Positions 2,664 to 39,400 of a stretch of 64,000 bases of DNA are shown piece after piece. This DNA comes from Styela clava (Eukaryota): the NCBI RefSeq assembly GCF_964204865.1, contig NC_135258.1:5146001-5210000 (forward strand), written 5' to 3'. The position numbers and the translations under genes are program-made. Positions within the stretch are counted from its first letter, which is position 1, and every line of letters starts with the position of its first letter. The notes beneath the pieces were generated by a model, which was not told where the DNA came from, made no database searches, and saw nothing but the letters and a program-made list of their open reading frames with translations.

Positions 2664-3119
2664 CCCCACTGTATATAAAAACTCCTGTTTGAATTTGTTA
2701 CTCAATCTTGAATGGAACATTTGCTTGTGATATGTGCAACTAGCCTTCTGGCTTTTGTATAGTTTAAACATATGCATATCTATGTTTCACAATAATACTA
2801 CATGCAAAATATTTAAATTCCTGCTTGGAGAGGAATAGGGAAACATTGGCCCTAAAGAATCTAAATTTCTCGCTACATAAATAATAGCAGTATCATGTCA
2901 ATTACTTGCCATCAAAATAATATTTCAATACTACAAGAACCATTACAACTGTTAATTGGGGACTTAATTGATGTGTCAAACTCTTACTAGCCAGCATTCT
3001 TAATGAATGACAATTGAAGCCAGAACAAATCTATTTTTTTGCTTGATCAAATAAACCAAATGATTGGAGACTTAATGAATATTTCATATCTGTTGTTGAT
3101 CATGAAGATTTGAGGGTAT

Positions 3120-3620
3120 ACCAGTCTAGGTTCCTAGTCATGCTTGGGATAAGACATTCTTTGAAATATGGTTTGTCTTGTACTCTTGTCACAGCAGTTC
3201 AGTGAATTTTTTTATTATCTCATATTCTTATTGAACCGCCTAGATAGGACTTTTAAAACTGTCTATATAAGGCGAAGAGCATGTTCTCACATCTGATCAA
3301 CTGTCCAGATTTTGTATTGTTGGCCAGCCGTAAATTCTACGGGTGTACACGTGAATTGTGCAGCAAGCAATTGTGAGATTATTTTAATATTTGATAATAT
3401 TCCATCGGGTGGGTACACTTTTGTATAGTGTCATCCTAGTGAACAGATATAAATCCGATTGCTCGAAACTTTAGAACAAAATCAGGAGCAAAACTTATTT
3501 AACTGAAAGTTGGTGAACCATTCTGGATTGCATGCAGGTCCATCTCCCATAGCTCGTCAGTAATTCATCCAAACTATAGAAAAAAAAAACTTGAACTCTC
3601 TCACCCAGTTAACTATAATT
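3120..3620 (-). mobile_element. Heavily decayed LINE (L2/CR1-group) RT C-terminal fragment
   Basis: Frameshifted peptide remnants in the expected order: VREFKF, MTLYKS, PMEY, EHALRLI, KTNH/FKECLIPSMTR. Confidence 0.35.
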
Positions 3621-3949
3621 TCTAAGAAAATGCTGCAAGCTATATGGCTACGCTTCATTGTCAGATTCATGCAAGGCTCATCGGAAATAAGGGCCAATGC
3701 AACTCTTGAACACCCCAACTATCAAAAAGCTACATGTACTGTCTATCTGTTCAAGAGGAAGTAGTACCAGTGATTATAACCAGATTTATACTGCAAAAAT
3801 TTAATTATGAATACTGAAAATGGCTATCAAAAAAAGCACCAGCTTTATAAGCAGTGAAAAGTTGAGCAACTTCATGTAAATTGTTTACAGATTATGATTG
3901 GAAAAAATTGTGAGAGATAGTAGTGGAGGTGGCATAAGCAATTTTCTGG

Positions 3950-6132
3950 TCATAGCTCATCATGATTTTGTTCCTTGCCTTCTGGACGTTTGAATGCTCC
4001 AAGCTGATACATGACACCACTTTTCATGTTTTTGATCAGGAAGATGAAAGGATGATCCGCATAAAACATAATTCTTTTGTCAGCAGGTGTACGGTTGGCT
4101 TCCTCACGCTCCGCCTCAACCAATCCCCCTAGATGATTCACCTGAATTATCACAAATAAAATATTACTATTTAATATTACCAGCATACCATATGAATGGA
4201 TGATCAGCAAAAAAATCGGATTGCGAGATCAATTGAGCGTGCCATAATCCGGACAGTGGTGGCCGCGGCCGCCGTGCTGCCCTCTTCAGTAACCTGATGG
4301 AAATTGTATAAGATTCACTAGTATTCAATAATATTCCCCTAAACTGAAAAAATGTCAAACTTGCCTCTAGTACACCTTTGTGAAAAATGGCATCAACGAA
4401 GAGTGATTTGTCACCACTTATTCCAGATAGGTCAGCTTGGCCGGATGAAAATATATCTTTGATTCCCAGGTTTTGCAATGATTTTTGAAGTTCAATGCCA
4501 GCCTCCACTTTAAATTTTGGTAATGTGATCTAAAACCAACACAATGATAAACTGATTTAATCGAGATTTTAGTAAAGATGTGATTCCTGCATAGCAATGA
4601 AGGTTGTAACCCACATGATCGTGTATATATTTAAGTATTTGAAATATAATCGTGTTTTTTTATACTTTAACGAATATATTTGAATTACTCCGTATTGTCA
4701 TAACCAACCCAACTGATGACCATAAAACAGACTGGATCAAAATTCATAATAGATTTGACAAAGTACATTATTTGAAGAAATTGAGACTTACATCAACAGT
4801 TTCGTAGTCCATGTTGGAAATCCAATTGGTAAGGTTCTCATAGTTTAAGTTCTTCTCAACAGATGCAAGATCAAAATTGTCTGGCAGGAAAAGGTACATG
4901 CTGATATCTTGGTCAACGTAAGGCAATTCCAAAACCTGAAGACTCAATGATTCAATATACCGAAAACGAAACTTTCCTGTAAAAATTAGAAATAAGCATT
5001 ACTTAAAACTTACATTATGTATTTAATACTTATTTCCTGAATTGATTTAAATTATTTGAAAAAATGAAACGCTTCTCTCTCTCACCTCTTTGATACATGA
5101 ATGCAGTATTGATGATTCTGTAATGCGACACATAAAATGCTCTTTTATCAGTGTGCATTGGTGTAAAACCAGAGTGCCATTCACCAGTAAAATAAAGGGT
5201 GTTGACAAGGACCAAAGCAGTTGTCGCATCTAGATCGTCTTCGTTGAGCATATTTGGAATGAGGTCGCCAGTTTCTTGAGAAATCCATTTATTGATGTGA
5301 GATACAGATGCCTTGTCCCCAAAATCCAACTATAAAAAGAATTAGTTTAATTATTATATGAACACTCTCATATTAGCATGCAATGTAAGTTTATATACTC
5401 ACATCTCCAATTTTCGCTCCAAACACCGAGAGAGCATTTTTATAGTCATTCAACACACTGGCAGTCTTTGAAATGAATGCTCCATTCGCACCTTTCAGGG
5501 TGATGTTGTCTTTAGGCTACAAAAAAGTTTGGCATAAAGATCATACATAAGTAAAAACGCATAAAATGTAATGTGTATATTTTTTGATTCTGAGAATTGC
5601 ATGAAAATATTAATATAGTCTAAAATTACCTTGTCAAAAAGAAGTCCATTCAGTTCACCAAATGCTGAATTAATTAGTAATGCTTTAACATCTTTTAAAT
5701 GAAGGGCTTCTGCAATTTGTTTGGTGGAATTTTTCTTCGTTCCTAACTTCACCATTGCCAAAGCTGTTAAATAGTGCAATTTCATTACAAGTCATAATAT
5801 TACCATTTTCAATAATTTCGCAAGGGATCGCAACTTCTTTAAAAAATGAAAGCGATATTATTGCTTATAATATCATTATACTATTATACTATATATTATT
5901 ATTATAAGATAGACAAACAAGTTTTCATACCTGCTGAGACGCTGACTGGAGAGAATACCACATTTACTGTTTTGGGTTGTGCAATAATTTCCCTGTAAAG
6001 ATCCACAGCGAACTTCGAATTTGCAGCTGTTAACTTTTCCACGGCATCACTGTATATGTTAGCTGTTCCGTAGACATTCGAAACTAGCAATTCCGACAAC
6101 AAAGCCAGACAAATTGACGAAAACGTGGACAT
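3950..6132 (-). CDS. Serpin with N-terminal signal peptide and C-terminal HDEL ER-retention signal (about 411 aa, HSP47/SERPINH1-like C-terminus)
   Basis: Exons join in frame: 6132-5931, 5763-5630, 5516-5403, 5329-5086, 4976-4792, 4529-4365, 4141-3950. Serpin motifs: NSKFAVDLY, NVVFSPVSV, INKWISQET, LVLVNTLYFTGEW, QVLELPY, LPKFKVE, ADLSGIS, FYADHPFIFLIK. Ends NHDEL*. The last intron has a GC donor. Confidence 0.92.
4189..4293 (-). CDS. Alternative serpin RCL exon (inhibitory type, P1-P1' R-S), frame-broken in this assembly
   Basis: Phase-0 acceptor tttccatcag| followed by VTEEGSTAAAATTVRIMARSIDLAIRFF. A T7 run (4209-4215) shifts the following ADHPFIW out of frame and gives C* instead. Donor-like TG|gtatgc at 4188. 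Confidence 0.7.
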
Positions 6133-6869
6133 TTCCAGACCGCCGTCAGACTAACCTATCACTGTGTCAACTAACCAAACTGAAAAGACATCGATTAAAG
6201 TTTGATTGAATATAATATTCAATCCCAATTACATTCGATTTTACTCTGATCAAAAGAAACGAGACCATAACATATCAATTTCAGAATTTAGCGTTTTCTA
6301 AAGACTTTTTTCACAACCGCCGCGTCGCGGAATAGGTTTAGTCTGCGCAAAACTGCACAAAAGTTGTGGGAAGCCTTTGCATATGATTTCGACGTAACCC
6401 CTGTGTGTTACATCTCGCGATCATTCACAAAGCGTTTTTGTGAGATAACGAGAACTTAGTCCGTTATATATGCGTTCAAAAGACTATGCAAACAATTCTG
6501 ACCTAATTATATTAATTACTTTCGGCGCAATTGTTTGAGTTTATCCGTCAAAAACTCTGCGGGTTTCCTACTTCGCGCCTAAGAATAGAAAGATCCAGAA
6601 TTTTTAGGCGTCCGTCTGCTGATCAATTACTTTGGGAGTGAGAAAGATCCAGAAAGTCTAGAGCGGCAGTCATTTCACGCTTCACACATGGCTGCACCAT
6701 GGGCAACACGTGTCGTAACGAAATTGAAGAAGCTGTTTTTCGGTTGAGTGAACGTATATGTAAATAACTGAGGTGAAACAGGTTGGAAAAAGAATTCAGA
6801 AATGTTTAAATTGTTATATGTTATAGCCTATATTTGTACATATTTGTCTCACTACAAAGTCTTTTTTAA

Positions 6870-9240
6870 TACAATTGACAAACTTGATAATACGACGTAT
6901 AGGCAGACTAGAAGGCGTTTCTGTCAAGGAACTGCTTTCCTAATCAAAAAGGGTCTTCAGATAAAAAACCACAATATCCACATACCTTTCAGGCTAGCAA
7001 GTGTAGATATAACTCTTGATCGTGATATCCTAAGACTATACAACACCAATGCACCAGCAACATGGGTGTCTCCCAAGACCTACTTTTTTCGAAAAATGAC
7101 AAAAATAATAAGCCACCACAACTACCAAAACAAATATATAATTGTAGGGGATTTTAACTGTGTCCTAAGCGAAAAGGATACGTGGATGAAAAATAAGTAC
7201 GTCTCCACTACAGCGGAAAACGTATTAGGAATACAAGATACTTGACTCACTTAGAAAATTCCACCCCCAAAACAGGACATACACATATGTAAGGGAGCAC
7301 CGAGGGAGGAGAATAGCTAGAGTCTATCATAGTAGTGCGCTTGACGCCTTCCTAGAAGACTGCGGCTATGTTGTTAACACACTATCAGACCACACACTCC
7401 TGCCCTATATAAAAATAAAACGACCAGAAAAACATAGATGGGGAAAAGGCATTTGGAAAAACAACATTAAAGCATATAAAGACCAAAACTACCAAAAAAT
7501 AACAACAAACTTATACAAACAAGCCGAATTTGAACTTGAATATTCAAACTCCATTTACGAATGGTGGGATCAGTTTAAGGGCAAGGTTAAAAAGATTTCA
7601 AAAGCCTATTCATACCACCAAGCAAAAAGTAAACGGGAAAAAATTTCACAGACTGAAAAAGATTCAGAAAAGCTAATAAAAGAGGGGGATCCAAAAAATC
7701 TAATAAAAATTGAAAAGATGAAAAGAATACTGATTGATGAAATAGAAGAAAAACAAGATAAACCGGGGATGAGTAATATAGAAGAAGACGAAGCCCCAAA
7801 ACAAACGCAAATTTAAAAGATAAAGAATAGTAATGGCCAAATAGTTAAGAACGCGGAAAACGTTTTAGAGGTAGTGGAAGGTTTCTACCGAGATTTGTGG
7901 GGCGAGAAGGGAAAAACAAAAGAGGACGACCAAAATTATTTTTTAGAGCAAATGGAAACAACACAAATCCCCCCAGACCACAACAAAATAATTGGTGAAC
8001 CCACAACAGAGGATGAAATCAAGAACATAATAAAAGCTATGCCGAAAAACAAGTCCCCTGAAATGGATGGGTTATCTATCGAATTTTATCTAACATTTTG
8101 GGAGCTGATCAAAAACAAATTTATACAAGTAATCAATAACATTTGGGACCTTTCCCAAAAGTTCCAAATCAGCAAGAGTGGTATTAGTGTATAAAAAAGG
8201 AGATAGATTAGATCTTAAAAACTGGAGGCCAATATCTAACCCCCACACAGATTACAAGATAGTTGCAAAATTAATCAGCGATCGACTCAAAGCCATACTT
8301 TGTAATATAATTAGCCCATCCCAAAAAAGTACATTACCTGGAAGATCGATTCACGACGTACATTATAACATTGAAGCCATCCAAAACTATTGCAATTAAA
8401 ATAGTCAACCTGGAACCATTATAACAATCGACAATTTTAAAGCCTTTGATATGGTGAACCAAAATTTTCTTCTCAAAATCCTTAAAAAAATTGGTCTAAA
8501 TGAGAAACTTATAACAGTGATTCAAAATATTCATCACGACATAGTGAGCCAAGTTGAGATAAATGGAAAGTTAACCAAACCCATCAACATCAGAAGAGGC
8601 ATCCGACAAGGTTGCCCTTTTAGTATGTTGCTCTACGTAATAAATATAGAGCCATTGGCAAGAGTATTGACCCTAAATAACAAAATCAAAGGAATCAAGA
8701 TAGGAAAATTTGAGCATAAGATCGACCAATTTGCCGATGACCTCACCTTTGCTGCGATGGACATAACATCAGTAGACGAAATATTCACGGAACTACATCT
8801 CTTTCAAAAAGCCGCAGGGCAGAAAATAAATGCGGATAAGACCGGTATTTGGTGTATAAATCAGGGTTCTAGATGTAGAATGAAATACTCTACACACGCG
8901 CCATACTGTCACGACACCCTAAAAATATTAGGAATACACTATGAAAAAAACGACATAGATGAAACATGGATGAAAAGCCAAACCAAAATCATACGGGTGA
9001 TAAATAATTGTAAAAGTAGGGACCTCACCTGGTACGGAAAGCAAATTGTAATCAACTCCATATTTGCCTCTCTAATATTATACCCTGTACGAGGAAAGGG
9101 ACCACCTTCGACCTCGACACTCAAAGAGATCGAGAGAAGTCTGTTCAATTTTCTCTGGCATCCAGAGAAAATAGAATGCATAAAGCGAGACACGCTGAAA
9201 AAGAACCCAAAAAGCGGGGTTGACCGCTAAAAAGCAATCA
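6870..9240 (+). mobile_element. Decayed L1/Tx1-clade LINE ORF2 (APE endonuclease plus reverse transcriptase)
   Basis: Endonuclease motifs GTAFLIK, YNTNAP, IIVGDFNCVL, SDH. Linker WGKGIWKNN. RT motifs KSPEMDGL, NWRPIS..DYKIVAK, FKAFD, GIRQGCPFSMLLY, QFADD, LKILGI. Several stops and frameshifts. Confidence 0.9.
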
Positions 9241-13791: not shown

Positions 13792-14735
13792 TTATTCGTG
13801 ATCAAATCCCGAGTGCAACTCTTCTTTGATTTCAATTACTCGAGGTCCTTGTGATTTATGCTGCGATATCTTTTTATTTTGATCAAACTTGTGAGAAATA
13901 ACGGTGCTTTCCGAATACACGTGATCAGTTTGTTTCAACCCAACTATGTCTGCATTAGAAATAGTTTCGCATTTCGCATGCATCCGTTTTATGTGGTCGT
14001 TGACATAAACTTCTACAGCAAATCTTTTTCCACATATCTCACATGCATAAGGCTTTTTGTTTGAGTGTATTGTGTGCAAATGAGTGTTCAGACTATGTTG
14101 TTGACTGAATGTCCTTCCACATAATTTACAGATAAACGGTTTTTCACCTGTGTGTGTACGCATATGTAAATGCAGTTCGCATTGTTGCACCTTAATGGCA
14201 CCACATATCTCACATTTGAATTGATATTCATTGGTAAATCTTCTCATATGTATATTTAAATTCTGTTTACGTGCAAATAATTTATCGCAAATTGTGCATC
14301 CAAATCTCTTCTCTTTTGTATGAGTAAACATATGGTGATAAAGGTGAGATTTGCAGCCGAAGGACCGTCCACAGATTTCACACACAAATTTATTTGTATG
14401 TCGATTCAAATGTTTTCTCAAACTGCTATTGTCGCAAAATCCTTTCCCACATTTGTATGGTCTTTCCCCTGTGTGTTGTCTCATGTGAATAATCTTACTC
14501 TTCACATCGCCAAGTACTTTCCCGCAAACTTCGCATTTCTGTTGATTTTGCAACTCAATCTCATGTGAGATTTTAAGCGACTATTCTGGGTATATCCCTT
14601 GCAGCAAGTTTCACACTTATGTGGTGGTTCTCCAGTGTGCGTCGTTTGATGATTTCTGAGAAGCCTAATCCAACGAAAACTTTTACCACAAATACCGCAT
14701 TCGTGAGACTTACTTTGTATAGCCATTTCTTCCAT
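13792..14735 (-). pseudogene. C2H2 zinc-finger gene copy, disabled (paralog of 19959-20903)
   Basis: Colinear with the intact copy but split into ORFs 14502-14735 and 13792-14553 by a net 13-nt deletion at the end of finger 2. A 9-nt deletion removes a Cys of finger 4 (YKCGKGF). Finger 6 has His replaced by Phe (HMRRF). Confidence 0.85.
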
Positions 14736-19958: not shown

Positions 19959-20903
19959 TTATTCATGATCATATTCTGAATGTAATTCTTCTTTGATTTC
20001 AATTATATGGGGTGCTTGTAATTTAGCGTTTTGATCAATCTTACAGGCAATAACGGTGGGTTCCGAATACATATGATTAGTTGGCTCCTGTTCAACTTTG
20101 TCTGTCTTTGCGCGCTTGCTTTTTAAATGGCTCTGTTTTATGTGAGCATTGACATAAACTTGTACGGCAAATCTTTTTCCACATATTTCACATGCATAAG
20201 GCTTTTTGCTGGAGTGCACTGTCTTCATATGAGTATTCCGACTACCTCGTTGACTAAATGCCCTCCCACATAATTTACATACAAACGGTTTTTCACCCGT
20301 GTGGGTGCGCATATGACTATTCAGCTCAGATTGTTGCACCTTGATGACACCACATATTTCACATTTGAATTGATATTCATCAGTATGCCTTCTCATATGC
20401 AACTTCAAATTCTCTTTGCGTGCGAATAATTTATCGCATACAGTGCAAATAAATTGCTTTTCGTTTGTATGAGTGAGAATATGATAGGAAAGGTGAGATT
20501 TGCAGCCGAAGGACCGTTCACAGATTTCACACACAAATTTATTTGCATGTTGATTCATATGCTTTCTCAAAGTACTATTATCGCTAAAGCCTTTTCCACA
20601 CTCTTCACATTTATATGGTCTTTCCCCTGTATGTTGTCTCATATGAATAGTCTTACTCCGCACATCTCCGAGTACCTTCCCACAAACTTCACATTTCTGT
20701 TGATTTTGTGGTTTATCCGGAAAGTGCAAACGCAGATGGTTTCTCAAATGACTGTTCTGTGTAAATCCCTTGCCACAAATTTCACACTTATGAGGTCGTT
20801 CTCCAGTGTGTGTCGTTCGATGGTCCCTGAGATGACTAATCTGTCCAAAACTTTTACCACAAATGCCGCATTCGTGCAACTTTTTTCGTTTAATTTTTTT
20901 CAT
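19959..20903 (-). CDS. C2H2 (Kruppel-type) zinc-finger protein, 9 fingers, 314 aa
   Basis: Nine CxxC...HxxxH repeats with TGERP/TGEKP linkers. In-frame stop upstream of the ATG. Splice acceptor ttcttgttttattcag near 20945 suggests a non-coding upstream exon. Confidence 0.92.
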   Translation of the reverse strand: MKKIKRKKLHECGICGKSFGQISHLRDHRTTHTGERPHKCEICGKGFTQNSHLRNHLRLHFPDKPQNQQKCEVCGKVLGDVRSKTIHMRQHTGERPYKCEECGKGFSDNSTLRKHMNQHANKFVCEICERSFGCKSHLSYHILTHTNEKQFICTVCDKLFARKENLKLHMRRHTDEYQFKCEICGVIKVQQSELNSHMRTHTGEKPFVCKLCGRAFSQRGSRNTHMKTVHSSKKPYACEICGKRFAVQVYVNAHIKQSHLKSKRAKTDKVEQEPTNHMYSEPTVIACKIDQNAKLQAPHIIEIKEELHSEYDHE

Positions 20904-36111: not shown

Positions 36112-36404
36112 AAAGTGTTCTTCTGGGTCGTTTGCAAATTAAAATCTCAATCACCTTCAGAACGTTGACAAACCTTGTTACATTGCATCCATGACCTGTT
36201 CTCACTGAAACGGAGCCATACCCATATAATATGATTTCCTTTACCATTTATCTAACAGATTTGCTTATAAATATTCAGATTAATCAATTGAATAGAGAGT
36301 TTAATAGTTCAATATCGGCAAGAGGACCAGATGGTTAATTCAATTGCAAGTTTTATAGTGCAAGATTGACGAGAGTCGCGGCTTTTGAACAGCAAATAAC
36401 AGCC

Positions 36405-39400
36405 ATGACTTTACGAAACAATCGTACAAAATATGAAAAGATACCACTTAAAGATTCGTCTTCAGGTGACGACGATTCGGGGACTCATTCTAGCGAAAGT
36501 CCAACAATAAAAAAGAAATCTCTAATCAAATTAAAACGAGAAATTGGAATATTTTCTGGGGTTTGTCTTGTCGTGAGCACCATGATAGGATCAGGGATTT
36601 TTGTCGTCCCAACTGGAGTTTTAAAATACTGTGACGGGGATGTAAAATTGAGTATTCTAATCTGGGGTATCGGAGGCATGATTGCAATGCTGGCAGCATT
36701 ATGTGTTTGCGAACTTGGGGCTTCAATACCCGAATCAGGGTCTTGGATGACTTTTATTCACTACTCCTTTGGACCGCTATTATCATTTATATTTACCTGG
36801 ATGACTGTGGTTGTATCGGCACCCGAGGGATTAGCTGCGCAGTTTATAGCGCTCGGGGAATACATGACAAGACTGTACTTTGAGGCTGGGAAATGTGAAG
36901 TTCCTAACGCGACTTTGCTGAAGAAGTTACTCGGCGTTCCTGTTGCATTGGTGATTATGGTGTTAAACATGACGAAAGTGAAATGGGCCGTCAGACTGCA
37001 GGTAATTTTCCTTTTTTTTATGCGACGCTCCGAACAAGGTCACCGAAAAGAAAGCTACTATTATATGAAACTACCGGATTAAAACTCTTTGAACCCTGAA
37101 AGCCGCTAAAGCGGCTTTCCCGAGAAAGTCTTCTGACGCTGAAAGCCGCTTTAGCGGCTTTCGCATCCCGTAAGAGGTATGCAACTTTGAAACCTCATAT
37201 CTCGCGAACCATTTATTATATTTAGACAAGTTTTGCATCGTGTGAAAGATAATCTACAGGACTAAGTATAATTTTAAAATTGAGATAAAATATTGTGATC
37301 ATCTTATGAAAATTGGCAAAATTAAAAAGCATAAAAAACTTCTGAAAATTGCTCAAATCTAATTGACAAAACTTCAATTTGTTTTCGATTAAACCTAGTA
37401 CATTATCGACAAAATTTGTAGAATTTGAAGATAGCTTTCCAGTGATACCATTAGATTGAACTTATGTTGCACCATTCAAATTTTAGAAGCATTTTTATTC
37501 GTGATTTTGTTTGTCGCAAGATCGAGGCGACGTCAAGGTGACGTAAATAACGACCTAACACATTTACGCCGTTACGCAGCGACGTTAAGCAATTACGTTA
37601 GCATGTAGCACGTTTACGTTTCATACGGGAAACACTTTTCCTCGCATGTTCGTAACGTCATTTACTTAAGTTCGTACTCGTGAAGCGACTAACGACTTGT
37701 AAACGATACACGGGGAAATTTACGCATTACATCCAGCCTCAAAATCGGTTCGACTAAAACACACAATACGCAGTGTTATTTCCGTTTTAATTGCATAAAG
37801 ATATGAAAAATACGAATAGCAAAAATAAGGATTTCTAAAAACAGAATGATGGAACATATCGATGGATGCATTGTTTAGCGCCATTGCTGAGTTTTATTGT
37901 GCCATATATTCTTCTTCCGATAGATGAATACTATCCAATATTTCAACTGGACAAAGCTTTCGTTTAAAATCCATTGTAAATATAGCGATATCAGGAATGT
38001 AGCGTATATGCAGTAATTTCGAAAATCTAATGTGGCCGCAAACTGTAAAACACTGACCAAGTGAGCTACTGGTGCCACCATGTCTTCCATGTACCCGTTA
38101 TCAGATTTTTTTTTTATTATTCAATCTTCATGATATCCAACGGGGAATGAATAATTAGCCTTGATGTTTCCGGCGGAACCTCATAAATGCATGAGGATCA
38201 AATATTTCGTTTTGGCCTTTCAATTGCGTCCCATATCCAAATAGTAAACGTATATAAAATGGCCTTTATATTCTAGCAATTTTACTATGTTCAATCAAAA
38301 TTCGTCTGAAAGGGTTTTATCTGCGGCCGAGGATACGATACTGATGCAATGATGACACAATCTGCACTCAAGCTGTGAACGACCAGATGTGCAATTGCGC
38401 AATATACCTCACGCAAGGAGTTACGCACGATACGTCGCATGAACGTTATCACGACAATGTCGTCGTCGCCCTTTGCGTTCTTACGCAAACTTGGCGTCAA
38501 AATAGTTGATCAATTTTGTTCGCAAACCATTTGAATCGATAGTACAAATTCTGCAATAAAATGAGTTATGCGTATGTTAAGAAATTCATCCGTATATCCT
38601 TCGAAATGTAATTTTGTCTACTTTTCAAAATTTTACTAATATTGATGATACATTTCTAAAAAATGTATTAAATATTACCAAAATACAAAAAAATAGTAGA
38701 TGGGGCTAAAAATAGGCTTACACATCTCATCAAAACATCTCGTGAAAAATAATGCCAGTTAAAAATAAAAGACTAGATAAGCTTTTATATGACATATTAC
38801 AGACCATCTGATATCTAATGGCCTTTGTTTTGAAGGTTTTGTCTTAAAAAAAATGTTGTCCGTAGAAACGTCCTGATTTTGACATTTGTTTCTATTTGTT
38901 GTCTTATTTTAGGGGCAGAGCTTCTTATACCGGATACCTATATTGGTCAGTTCGAACAATTGATTTGCTAGAAATGTTAAGACACGGTTCGTACTGGCAT
39001 GAATACACTTTGTTTATTACATTTCGTTCTTTGTTATTATTCATGCCGGATGTCCTTATTTTTGGGTTCATATCGATGGCAGCCGTGACTGTGGTACTAG
39101 CTCGGGATAGATATCATGCCATAGTATTAGCTTCACCCGTCTCACTTGATTATTAAATTAACTCCATTTTTCTTTTCAGATTTTCTGTGCTTTCGGAAAA
39201 GTCGTTGCACTAGTTGGAATATCAACAGTCGGATTTATTCAACTTTTGAAAGACAGCACCGTTGCCAGAAATAATTTTATGCCTGGACCATCGAACGCAA
39301 GCTCCTTGACTGAAAGGTAATAAAACAAACATTTACCTGACTCTTGTTCCCTGGAAGATTATCCCTATAGATTATCATTGTAAAAAATTTAAACGCAACG

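Follow-up and report, generated by a model that had tools for sequence, protein, structure and literature searches.

A duplicated U6 serpin gene of Styela clava predicted to encode only its non-inhibitory form with an endoplasmic reticulum signal

The stretch of Styela clava DNA analysed here (64,000 nucleotides, NC_135258.1, positions 5,146,001 to 5,210,000 of the forward strand; hereafter the window, which contains no N) carries a seven-exon serpin gene on its minus strand, from position 6132 to 3950, together with the remains of an alternative exon lying just before the terminal one. We read the DNA directly, translated the exons and checked splice sites and phases. Exon 1 (5931-6132) starts at an ATG at 6132, encodes a hydrophobic, signal-peptide-like N-terminus and ends in phase 1 (intron 60a). 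Exons 2 (5630-5763) and 3 (5403-5516) were placed by direct reading and by alignment with a paralog described below. Exon 4 (5086-5329) stops in phase 1, with intron 225a splitting a Gly codon, and includes an Arg equivalent to R222 of the collagen chaperone HSP47; exon 5 (4792-4976) shows a window-derived change of Gly to Asp in the conserved LPY.G motif; and exon 6 (4365-4529) ends in phase 0 after ...HKGVLE. At the amino acid level, exon 1 is 94% and exon 6 is 100% identical to the paralog. The terminal exon, B (3950-4141), encodes 63 residues with a charged, non-canonical hinge and loop, the strand FYADHPFIF, an RPEG tail and a terminal HDEL, and closes with a stop at 3952-3950. All seven coding exons (1-6 and B) are open with intact splice sites, and the six introns have phases 1, 0, 0, 1, 0 and 0. 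All acceptors are AG and all donors GT, except for a GC donor after exon 6 (4363-4364) in the strong context GAG/GCAAGT, which is identical in the paralog. GC donors are weak sites, often tied to alternative splicing. The Pfam Serpin family (PF00079) matches exon 4 (3e-20), exon 5 (2e-11), exon 6 (4e-15) and exon B (1e-4), which cover consecutive profile positions (117-195, 199-256, 263-316 and 332-370).

Exon 6 is followed by two phase-0 AG acceptors, at 4293 for an exon A and at 4141 for exon B, exactly where the original prediction had placed them after HKGVLE. Its description of exon A as a canonical inhibitory hinge and reactive-centre loop (RCL) with P1 Arg, and of exon B as a charged loop with an HDEL end, was likewise reproduced by direct translation: the hinge of exon A reads EEGSTAAAA, and the usual count from the P15 Gly gives Arg at P1 and Ser at P1'. 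The exon A of the window (4189-4293) is nevertheless a pseudo-exon, with frameshift and truncation behind its RCL. Read in the frame of the hinge it meets a TGA at 4206-4204, and its motif FFADHPFIW sits in the +1 frame, with a run of seven T (4209-4215) that is one base longer than in the frame of the paralog. Behind this, base-by-base alignment reveals a 98-nucleotide deletion (alignment columns 212-309) whose breakpoint lies at 4189-4190, within 2 nucleotides, at a GG/GGAT microhomology; the same deletion appears as a blastn gap opposite positions 5095-5190 of the paralog locus (L004). It has removed strands s4B and s5B, the endoplasmic reticulum (ER) tail and the stop of exon A, and its flanks are clean.

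The acceptor of exon A is intact and a GT donor is kept at 4188-4187, at the head of a 47-nucleotide spacer or mini-intron (4142-4188) that leads to the exon B acceptor. Even when the T run is corrected on paper, direct reading joins the shortened exon A to exon B out of frame, with a stop at the junction. A tblastn search of the window with all exon peptides brought up no additional serpin C-terminal exon by which exon A might be completed. Every reading of this exon would thus give a truncated protein, and full length is within reach of the B product alone: with the intact paralog as reference, the deletion and frameshift together are the reason why we predict no full-length inhibitor from the window locus. 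The proposal that A and B are interchangeable exons of one working gene consequently fails at this locus. As far as the sequence can tell, a splice switch can operate at the paralog and not here.

The paralog was found by searching the S. clava genome with exon B. It lies on the same contig, 7.5 Mb away (C10:12.65 Mb), and the genome search found no U6-type copies beyond these two (U6 being the serpin group discussed below). By blastn, the duplicated segment spans window positions 2664-6822, roughly 4.2 kb made up of the gene, about 690 nucleotides of upstream and about 1.3 kb of downstream sequence. Identity is about 95% where the copies align, and roughly 92-99% per segment over ungapped columns, introns included. 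The 71-nucleotide intron after exon 6 differs by 1 base between the copies, while the other introns are 92-97% identical. Exon A of the paralog is open for 64 codons and runs past HPFIW through s4B, s5B and an RPEG tail to HQEL (L004 5104-5115) and a TAG stop. This stop lies 7 nucleotides before a GT donor, from which a 48-nucleotide spacer leads to the exon B acceptor. The paralog also has the GC donor after exon 6, at about L004 5365-5366. The exon B peptides of the two copies are 97% identical, with 2 of 63 residues different and neither of them at a position invariant in B-type exons.

The upstream edge of the window duplicate adjoins a reverse-transcriptase fragment, whereas the paralog, examined with about 10 kb on each side, is flanked by a DPP3 gene and an acetyl-CoA transporter gene; for this reason the window copy is probably the derived one. 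The fragment belongs to a non-LTR (long terminal repeat) retrotransposon (6802-9230, plus strand, RVT_1 E 2.5e-10) and begins where the similarity to the paralog stops, at 6822. DPP3 is a single open reading frame (ORF) of 798 codons (L004 1123-3519, plus strand, C10:12644122-12646518; Peptidase_M49 E 9.5e-230). It runs convergently towards the paralogous serpin, with about 1.3 kb between its end and the serpin stop. For a gene this large, a lack of introns is unusual beside a seven-exon neighbour.

By our own mapping in alpha1-antitrypsin numbering, introns one to four of the window gene take positions 60a, 106c, 144c and 225a without any offset. Introns five and six map to about 285c and 339c, which agrees, given the tolerance of the alignment, with the 283c and 339a published for the urochordate group U6 by Kumar and Bhandari (2014), who describe introns 60a, 106c, 144c, 225a, 283c and 339a and ER signals for this group (PMC4150122). 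In a phylogeny, exon 4 alone was placed inside the tunicate U6 clade with an SH-aLRT (Shimodaira-Hasegawa-like approximate likelihood ratio test) support of 100, the clade itself having a support of 100/99; the placement of the window gene is that of exon 4, with full-length database proteins of relatives serving as proxies for the rest. Exon 4 is at most 54% identical to known U6 members. Profile match, introns, ER end and exon 4 placement all fit membership of the serpin superfamily and of U6, to which we assign the gene.

The two-exon design is already known from this group. Ci-Spn-10A/B of Ciona is a published A/B exon pair of U6 (PMC4150122), and it bears out the original prediction's mention of a Ciona serpin with an HDEL splice variant. 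A HMMER scan of 1.84 billion representative sequences with exon B returned few relatives, the full-length one being Ciona savignyi H2Z1K4. A search with H2Z1K4 in turn returned serpins of Ciona intestinalis, Clavelina lepadiformis and Phallusia mammillata, followed by vertebrate clade B serpins at 34-36% identity. In Phallusia, CAB3265988 (A-type, ending HDEF) and CAB3265989 (B-type, ending HDEL) are identical up to ...HKAVLE, and in Clavelina the RefSeq isoforms X1 (XP_076812981, A-type, RDEL) and X2 (XP_076812982, B-type, HDEL) are identical for 350 residues. Evidence for both forms thus comes from annotated or mRNA-derived proteins of other species. A further B-type ORF of 389 amino acids lies on a 1292-nucleotide JGI (Joint Genome Institute) contig, which looks like a spliced transcript because it has no room for the introns of the family.

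Across nine B-type exons the elements GG, ER, YADHPF, KRP.G and HDEL are invariant. Ciona and Phallusia share the A-type end HDEF, Clavelina has RDEL there and the S. clava paralog HQEL; B-type ends are always HDEL. Because the same two exons recur in the paralog and in three other ascidian genera, the features of exons A and B lie far beyond chance. A protein search with the B-type end of one family member returned itself and Clavelina X2 only, adding no taxonomic breadth, and the ESM Atlas gave generic serpin clusters only. The F-box-like and WD40 neighbours of the Ciona U6 serpins were found neither among the neighbours in the window nor within about 10 kb either side of the paralog. What is new in S. 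clava is the duplicate with a dead exon A.

Where both exons are intact, a simple choice between inclusion and skipping of exon A could produce the two forms. With exon A included, the product would be an inhibitor ending at the stop of exon A itself, and exon B would serve as 3' untranslated region whether or not the mini-intron is removed. With exon A skipped, exon 6 would join exon B in phase 0 and give the B protein. We favour this mechanism as the simplest one because there is neither room nor signal for separate polyadenylation between A and B. A stop codon that near the last junction would escape nonsense-mediated decay under the usual 50-nucleotide rule. The A product would act on an Arg-specific serine protease as a suicide inhibitor, and the VR..AR/S of the A-type RCL is conserved across four genera. 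Since intact A-type exons also end in ER-like signals (HQEL, RDEL or HDEF), the contrast first drawn between a protease inhibitor and an ER-resident form does not hold; both products having ER-type ends, either alternative would belong to the ER or early secretory pathway, and the choice would not be one between a secreted and a resident protein.

The B product should not be an inhibitor. Serpin loop insertion requires small side chains in the hinge, and exon A keeps the Ala-rich consensus; in the B hinge, P14 is Gly, P11 and P9 are both Glu and P8 is always Arg, and it is these charged positions together with the Gly that lead us to predict a lack of inhibition. Retention of the B product in the ER would be mediated by its HDEL. 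In the B loop, GG..AER..A, nine sequences all agree at GG, ER and A, and this conservation speaks for a separate function of the loop and against simple decay of an inhibitory one. The best explanation of the locus is therefore, with good though not complete confidence, that it holds a duplicate of a U6 serpin in which exon A has been destroyed, and whose only full-length product is the predicted ER-retained, non-inhibitory B form.

The strongest competitor holds that the window copy is decaying in its entirety and no longer functional, the loss of exon A being just the earliest of its lesions to show. It is a gene-sized, dispersed duplicate (2664-6822) with its upstream edge at a reverse-transcriptase fragment; on the other side, neither exons 1-6 nor exon B show a broken frame or a damaged splice site, exon B is only 2 of 63 residues away from the paralog with every invariant B-type position kept, and about 690 nucleotides of upstream sequence were duplicated together with the gene. 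Comparison of the coding sequences of the two copies gave a synonymous divergence (dS) of 0.081 and a nonsynonymous divergence (dN) of 0.023, hence a dN/dS of 0.28 (p 2e-4 against neutrality). This is purifying selection, averaged over both copies and lineages, and it speaks against decay.

Several observations weigh against a working B-only gene. The dN/dS is an average over two lineages, and when the 21 amino acid differences between the copies were polarised with other ascidians, 5 proved window-derived and 2 paralog-derived, with 14 left unresolved. Among the window-derived changes is PYVDQD in exon 5, in the LPY.G motif, where Gly (PYVGQD) stands in the paralog and in 7 of the 8 further ascidian U6 proteins compared; this Gly-to-Asp change may be a sign of relaxed constraint, and the copy may be decaying as a whole. 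As the splice sites of exon A are intact, some transcripts may also carry the broken exon and encode a truncated serpin. Finally, the lesions were read from assembly sequence, and the extra T, lying in a homopolymer, could stem from misassembly. Taken together, the evidence suggests that a working B-only gene has slightly better than even prospects and a decaying one clearly less than even. Decay of the whole copy is thus possible, if on balance unlikely. Expression of the window copy and use of its acceptors are presumed here.

A different question is whether HSP47 has its tunicate counterpart in the B isoform, which would then use beta-sheet C and s1C to bind triple-helical collagen as an ER chaperone, with the exon switch toggling Tyr383 and Leu381. 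HSP47 contacts collagen through Arg222, Tyr245, Gln254, Met271, Ser305, Leu381, Phe382, Tyr383 and Asp385 (PMC8301893). Scored at these nine sites among 114 serpins, only HSP47/SERPINH2 and tunicate U6 serpins have at least six of the contacts; the relatives reach 5-9 of 9, the other 102 serpins at most 5, and the B form of C. savignyi has all nine. Four of the contact residues are rare elsewhere: Arg222, Met271, Leu381 and Tyr383 occur in 5%, 9%, 3% and 1% of the other serpins, respectively. Tyr383 is present in all B exons and in no A exon, with Arg222 on the shared scaffold. Read by eye against the alignment, the residues of the window gene at the nine sites are R, F, Q, L, T, M, F, Y and D. 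HSP47 is also the best match of exon B among solved structures in the PDB (E 3e-6), and intron 225a is common to U6 and the HSP47 group. Kumar and Bhandari noted this intron and an ER signal as features common to U6 and the HSP47 group of vertebrates, and did not claim orthology (PMC4150122).

The scaffold tree lends such a grouping no support and does not reject it: it is a polytomy of U6, HSP47, clade B and other groups, and forcing U6 and HSP47 into one clade costs a log-likelihood difference of only 0.16 (p 0.4 in the approximately unbiased test). In a local comparison set, HSP47 and SERPINH2 score higher against U6 than against clade B, but this set is biased towards U6 relatives, and overall identity of U6 is 34-36% to clade B and 29% to HSP47. 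His273 and His274, which serve pH-dependent release at the collagen site of HSP47, are absent; at these positions U6 shows Glu or Asp and a gap of one residue. The B loop is unlike that of HSP47. Of the introns 192a, 225a and 300c that make up the HSP47 (V6) gene structure (PMC2746811), 192a and 300c are absent from the window gene. A search with HSP47 found no clear ortholog in the S. clava genome, its best long matches, to the scaffold, being 23-26% identical; exon-by-exon scores in this genome are not comparable between intronless and multi-exon serpins. A dipeptide indel after antitrypsin residue 173 was considered as a marker and discarded as uninformative, as U6 has it, HSP47 is without it and SERPINH2 has it.

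The C-terminal tail, on which the suggested resemblance had leaned, helps less than it seemed. Against the HSP47 tail, exon A of the paralog (E 6e-6) and exon B perform about equally, since both exons have the RP.G tail, and so this tail is no HSP47 likeness of exon B in particular. The ADHPF.F.I core is generic for serpins: in a large library, the higher-scoring matches of exon B were plant-type serpins. The claim that exon B resembles HSP47 beyond its HDEL survives in the s1C-s4B segment, where exon B reaches 8.6 of 14 and clade B, as background, 7.0, and falls in s5B, where exon B agrees with HSP47 at 4.2 of 17 positions, below A-type exons (7.4) and clade B (6.9). We therefore rejected the notion that exon B as a whole is HSP47-like.

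With rare contact residues on one side and histidines, introns and s5B on the other, we consider an HSP47 counterpart unlikely, a shade more so than decay of the copy. The resemblance between U6 and HSP47 is best described, at the level of sequence, as a set of rare shared characters and not as a demonstrated relationship. That HSP47 arose from a gene of this kind is neither shown nor excluded, and we regard it as a reasonable hypothesis with about one chance in four. A more specific form, in which U6 is the tunicate sister of HSP47, an ancestral ER inhibitor gained an exon with Leu381 and Tyr383, and vertebrates kept only collagen binding, is doubtful. In that case the s1C and non-inserting loop of the second exon would have turned a scaffold with Arg222, Tyr245, Gln254 and Ser/Thr305 into a collagen binder, and the window copy, as a fresh duplicate without exon A, would be a natural replay of the last step.

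Finally, the idea that the window locus is a working splice switch and the defects of exon A are assembly errors can draw on the extra base in a seven-T homopolymer, a typical error site, and on the two intact splice sites of exon A, but it is very improbable given a 98-nucleotide deletion with clean flanks and microhomology that took s4B/s5B and the stop, a stop at the out-of-frame junction with exon B even after correction of the T run, and the lack of any alternative completing exon in the tblastn search of the window.

If the B-only reading is right, the window offers a clean example of a duplicate that lost one of two alternative exons, the inhibitory one, and so became a dedicated gene for a non-inhibitory ER serpin. 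HSP47 has so far been traced only to lampreys (PMC5583329). The window gene and its relatives, with the rare Arg222 and Tyr383 present and the latter supplied only by exon B, provide a testable lead on the origin of HSP47. Should the B form bind collagen, Ciona would be a genetic system in which one exon separates chaperone from inhibitor function.

Elsewhere in the window we observed two multi-finger C2H2 zinc-finger ORFs on the minus strand (13792-14553 and 19959-20903) and an amino-acid permease exon on the plus strand (36366-37082). Downstream of the serpin, outside the duplicated segment, lies a tandem array (1017-1499) of 13.6 copies of a 35-nucleotide unit with a higher-order period of 142 nucleotides (92% matches).

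Among known systems, secretory serpins of the neuroserpin lineage resemble the A-type product in having a signal peptide, an inhibitory RCL with P1 Arg and a KDEL-like end; examples are amphioxus Spn-1 with KDEL and sea urchin Spu-Spn-1 with HEEL (Kumar and Ragg 2008, PMC2556349). That lineage has a dibasic KR before the scissile bond and PDCD10 as an adjacent gene, whereas the RCL here reads VRIMAR/S and is accompanied by a second exon that is predicted to be non-inhibitory; no PDCD10 was found among the large ORFs of the window. Alternative RCL exons on one scaffold also occur in Drosophila Spn42Da (Spn4) and Manduca serpin-1. To our knowledge these genes have four to twelve such exons, all of them inhibitory. 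Some Spn4 isoforms carry an ER signal. U6 differs from both in having two exons, one of them judged non-inhibitory by its hinge, and ER-type ends on both. For Spn42Da, isoforms with different protease targets and cellular locations have been described (PMC4006314).

HSP47/SERPINH1 and SERPINH2 (V6) share with U6 an ER signal after an RP.G-type tail, the strand (L/M)FYADHPFIF, the residues Arg222, Tyr/Phe245, Gln254, Ser/Thr305 and Asp385, and intron 225a, and, as far as the B form is concerned, also a loop predicted to be non-inhibitory. The window gene differs from HSP47 in its five other introns, in its loop and in the divergent s5B of exon B. The closest likeness is to Ciona Ci-Spn-10A/10B and C. 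savignyi Cs-Spn-2, which have the same signal peptide, ER-type C-terminus and A-type Arg-Ser RCL (PMC4150122) and the same intron pattern as the window gene (60a, 106c, 144c, 225a and two later ones); Ci-Spn-10B has the same GG..AER..A loop and HDEL as exon B of the window. Compared with Ci-Spn-10, exon A of the window is destroyed, and the A-type end of Styela is HQEL, not HDEF. Both exons are kept in Clavelina X1/X2 and in the Phallusia pair, while in Styela only the paralog at C10:12.65 Mb keeps both.

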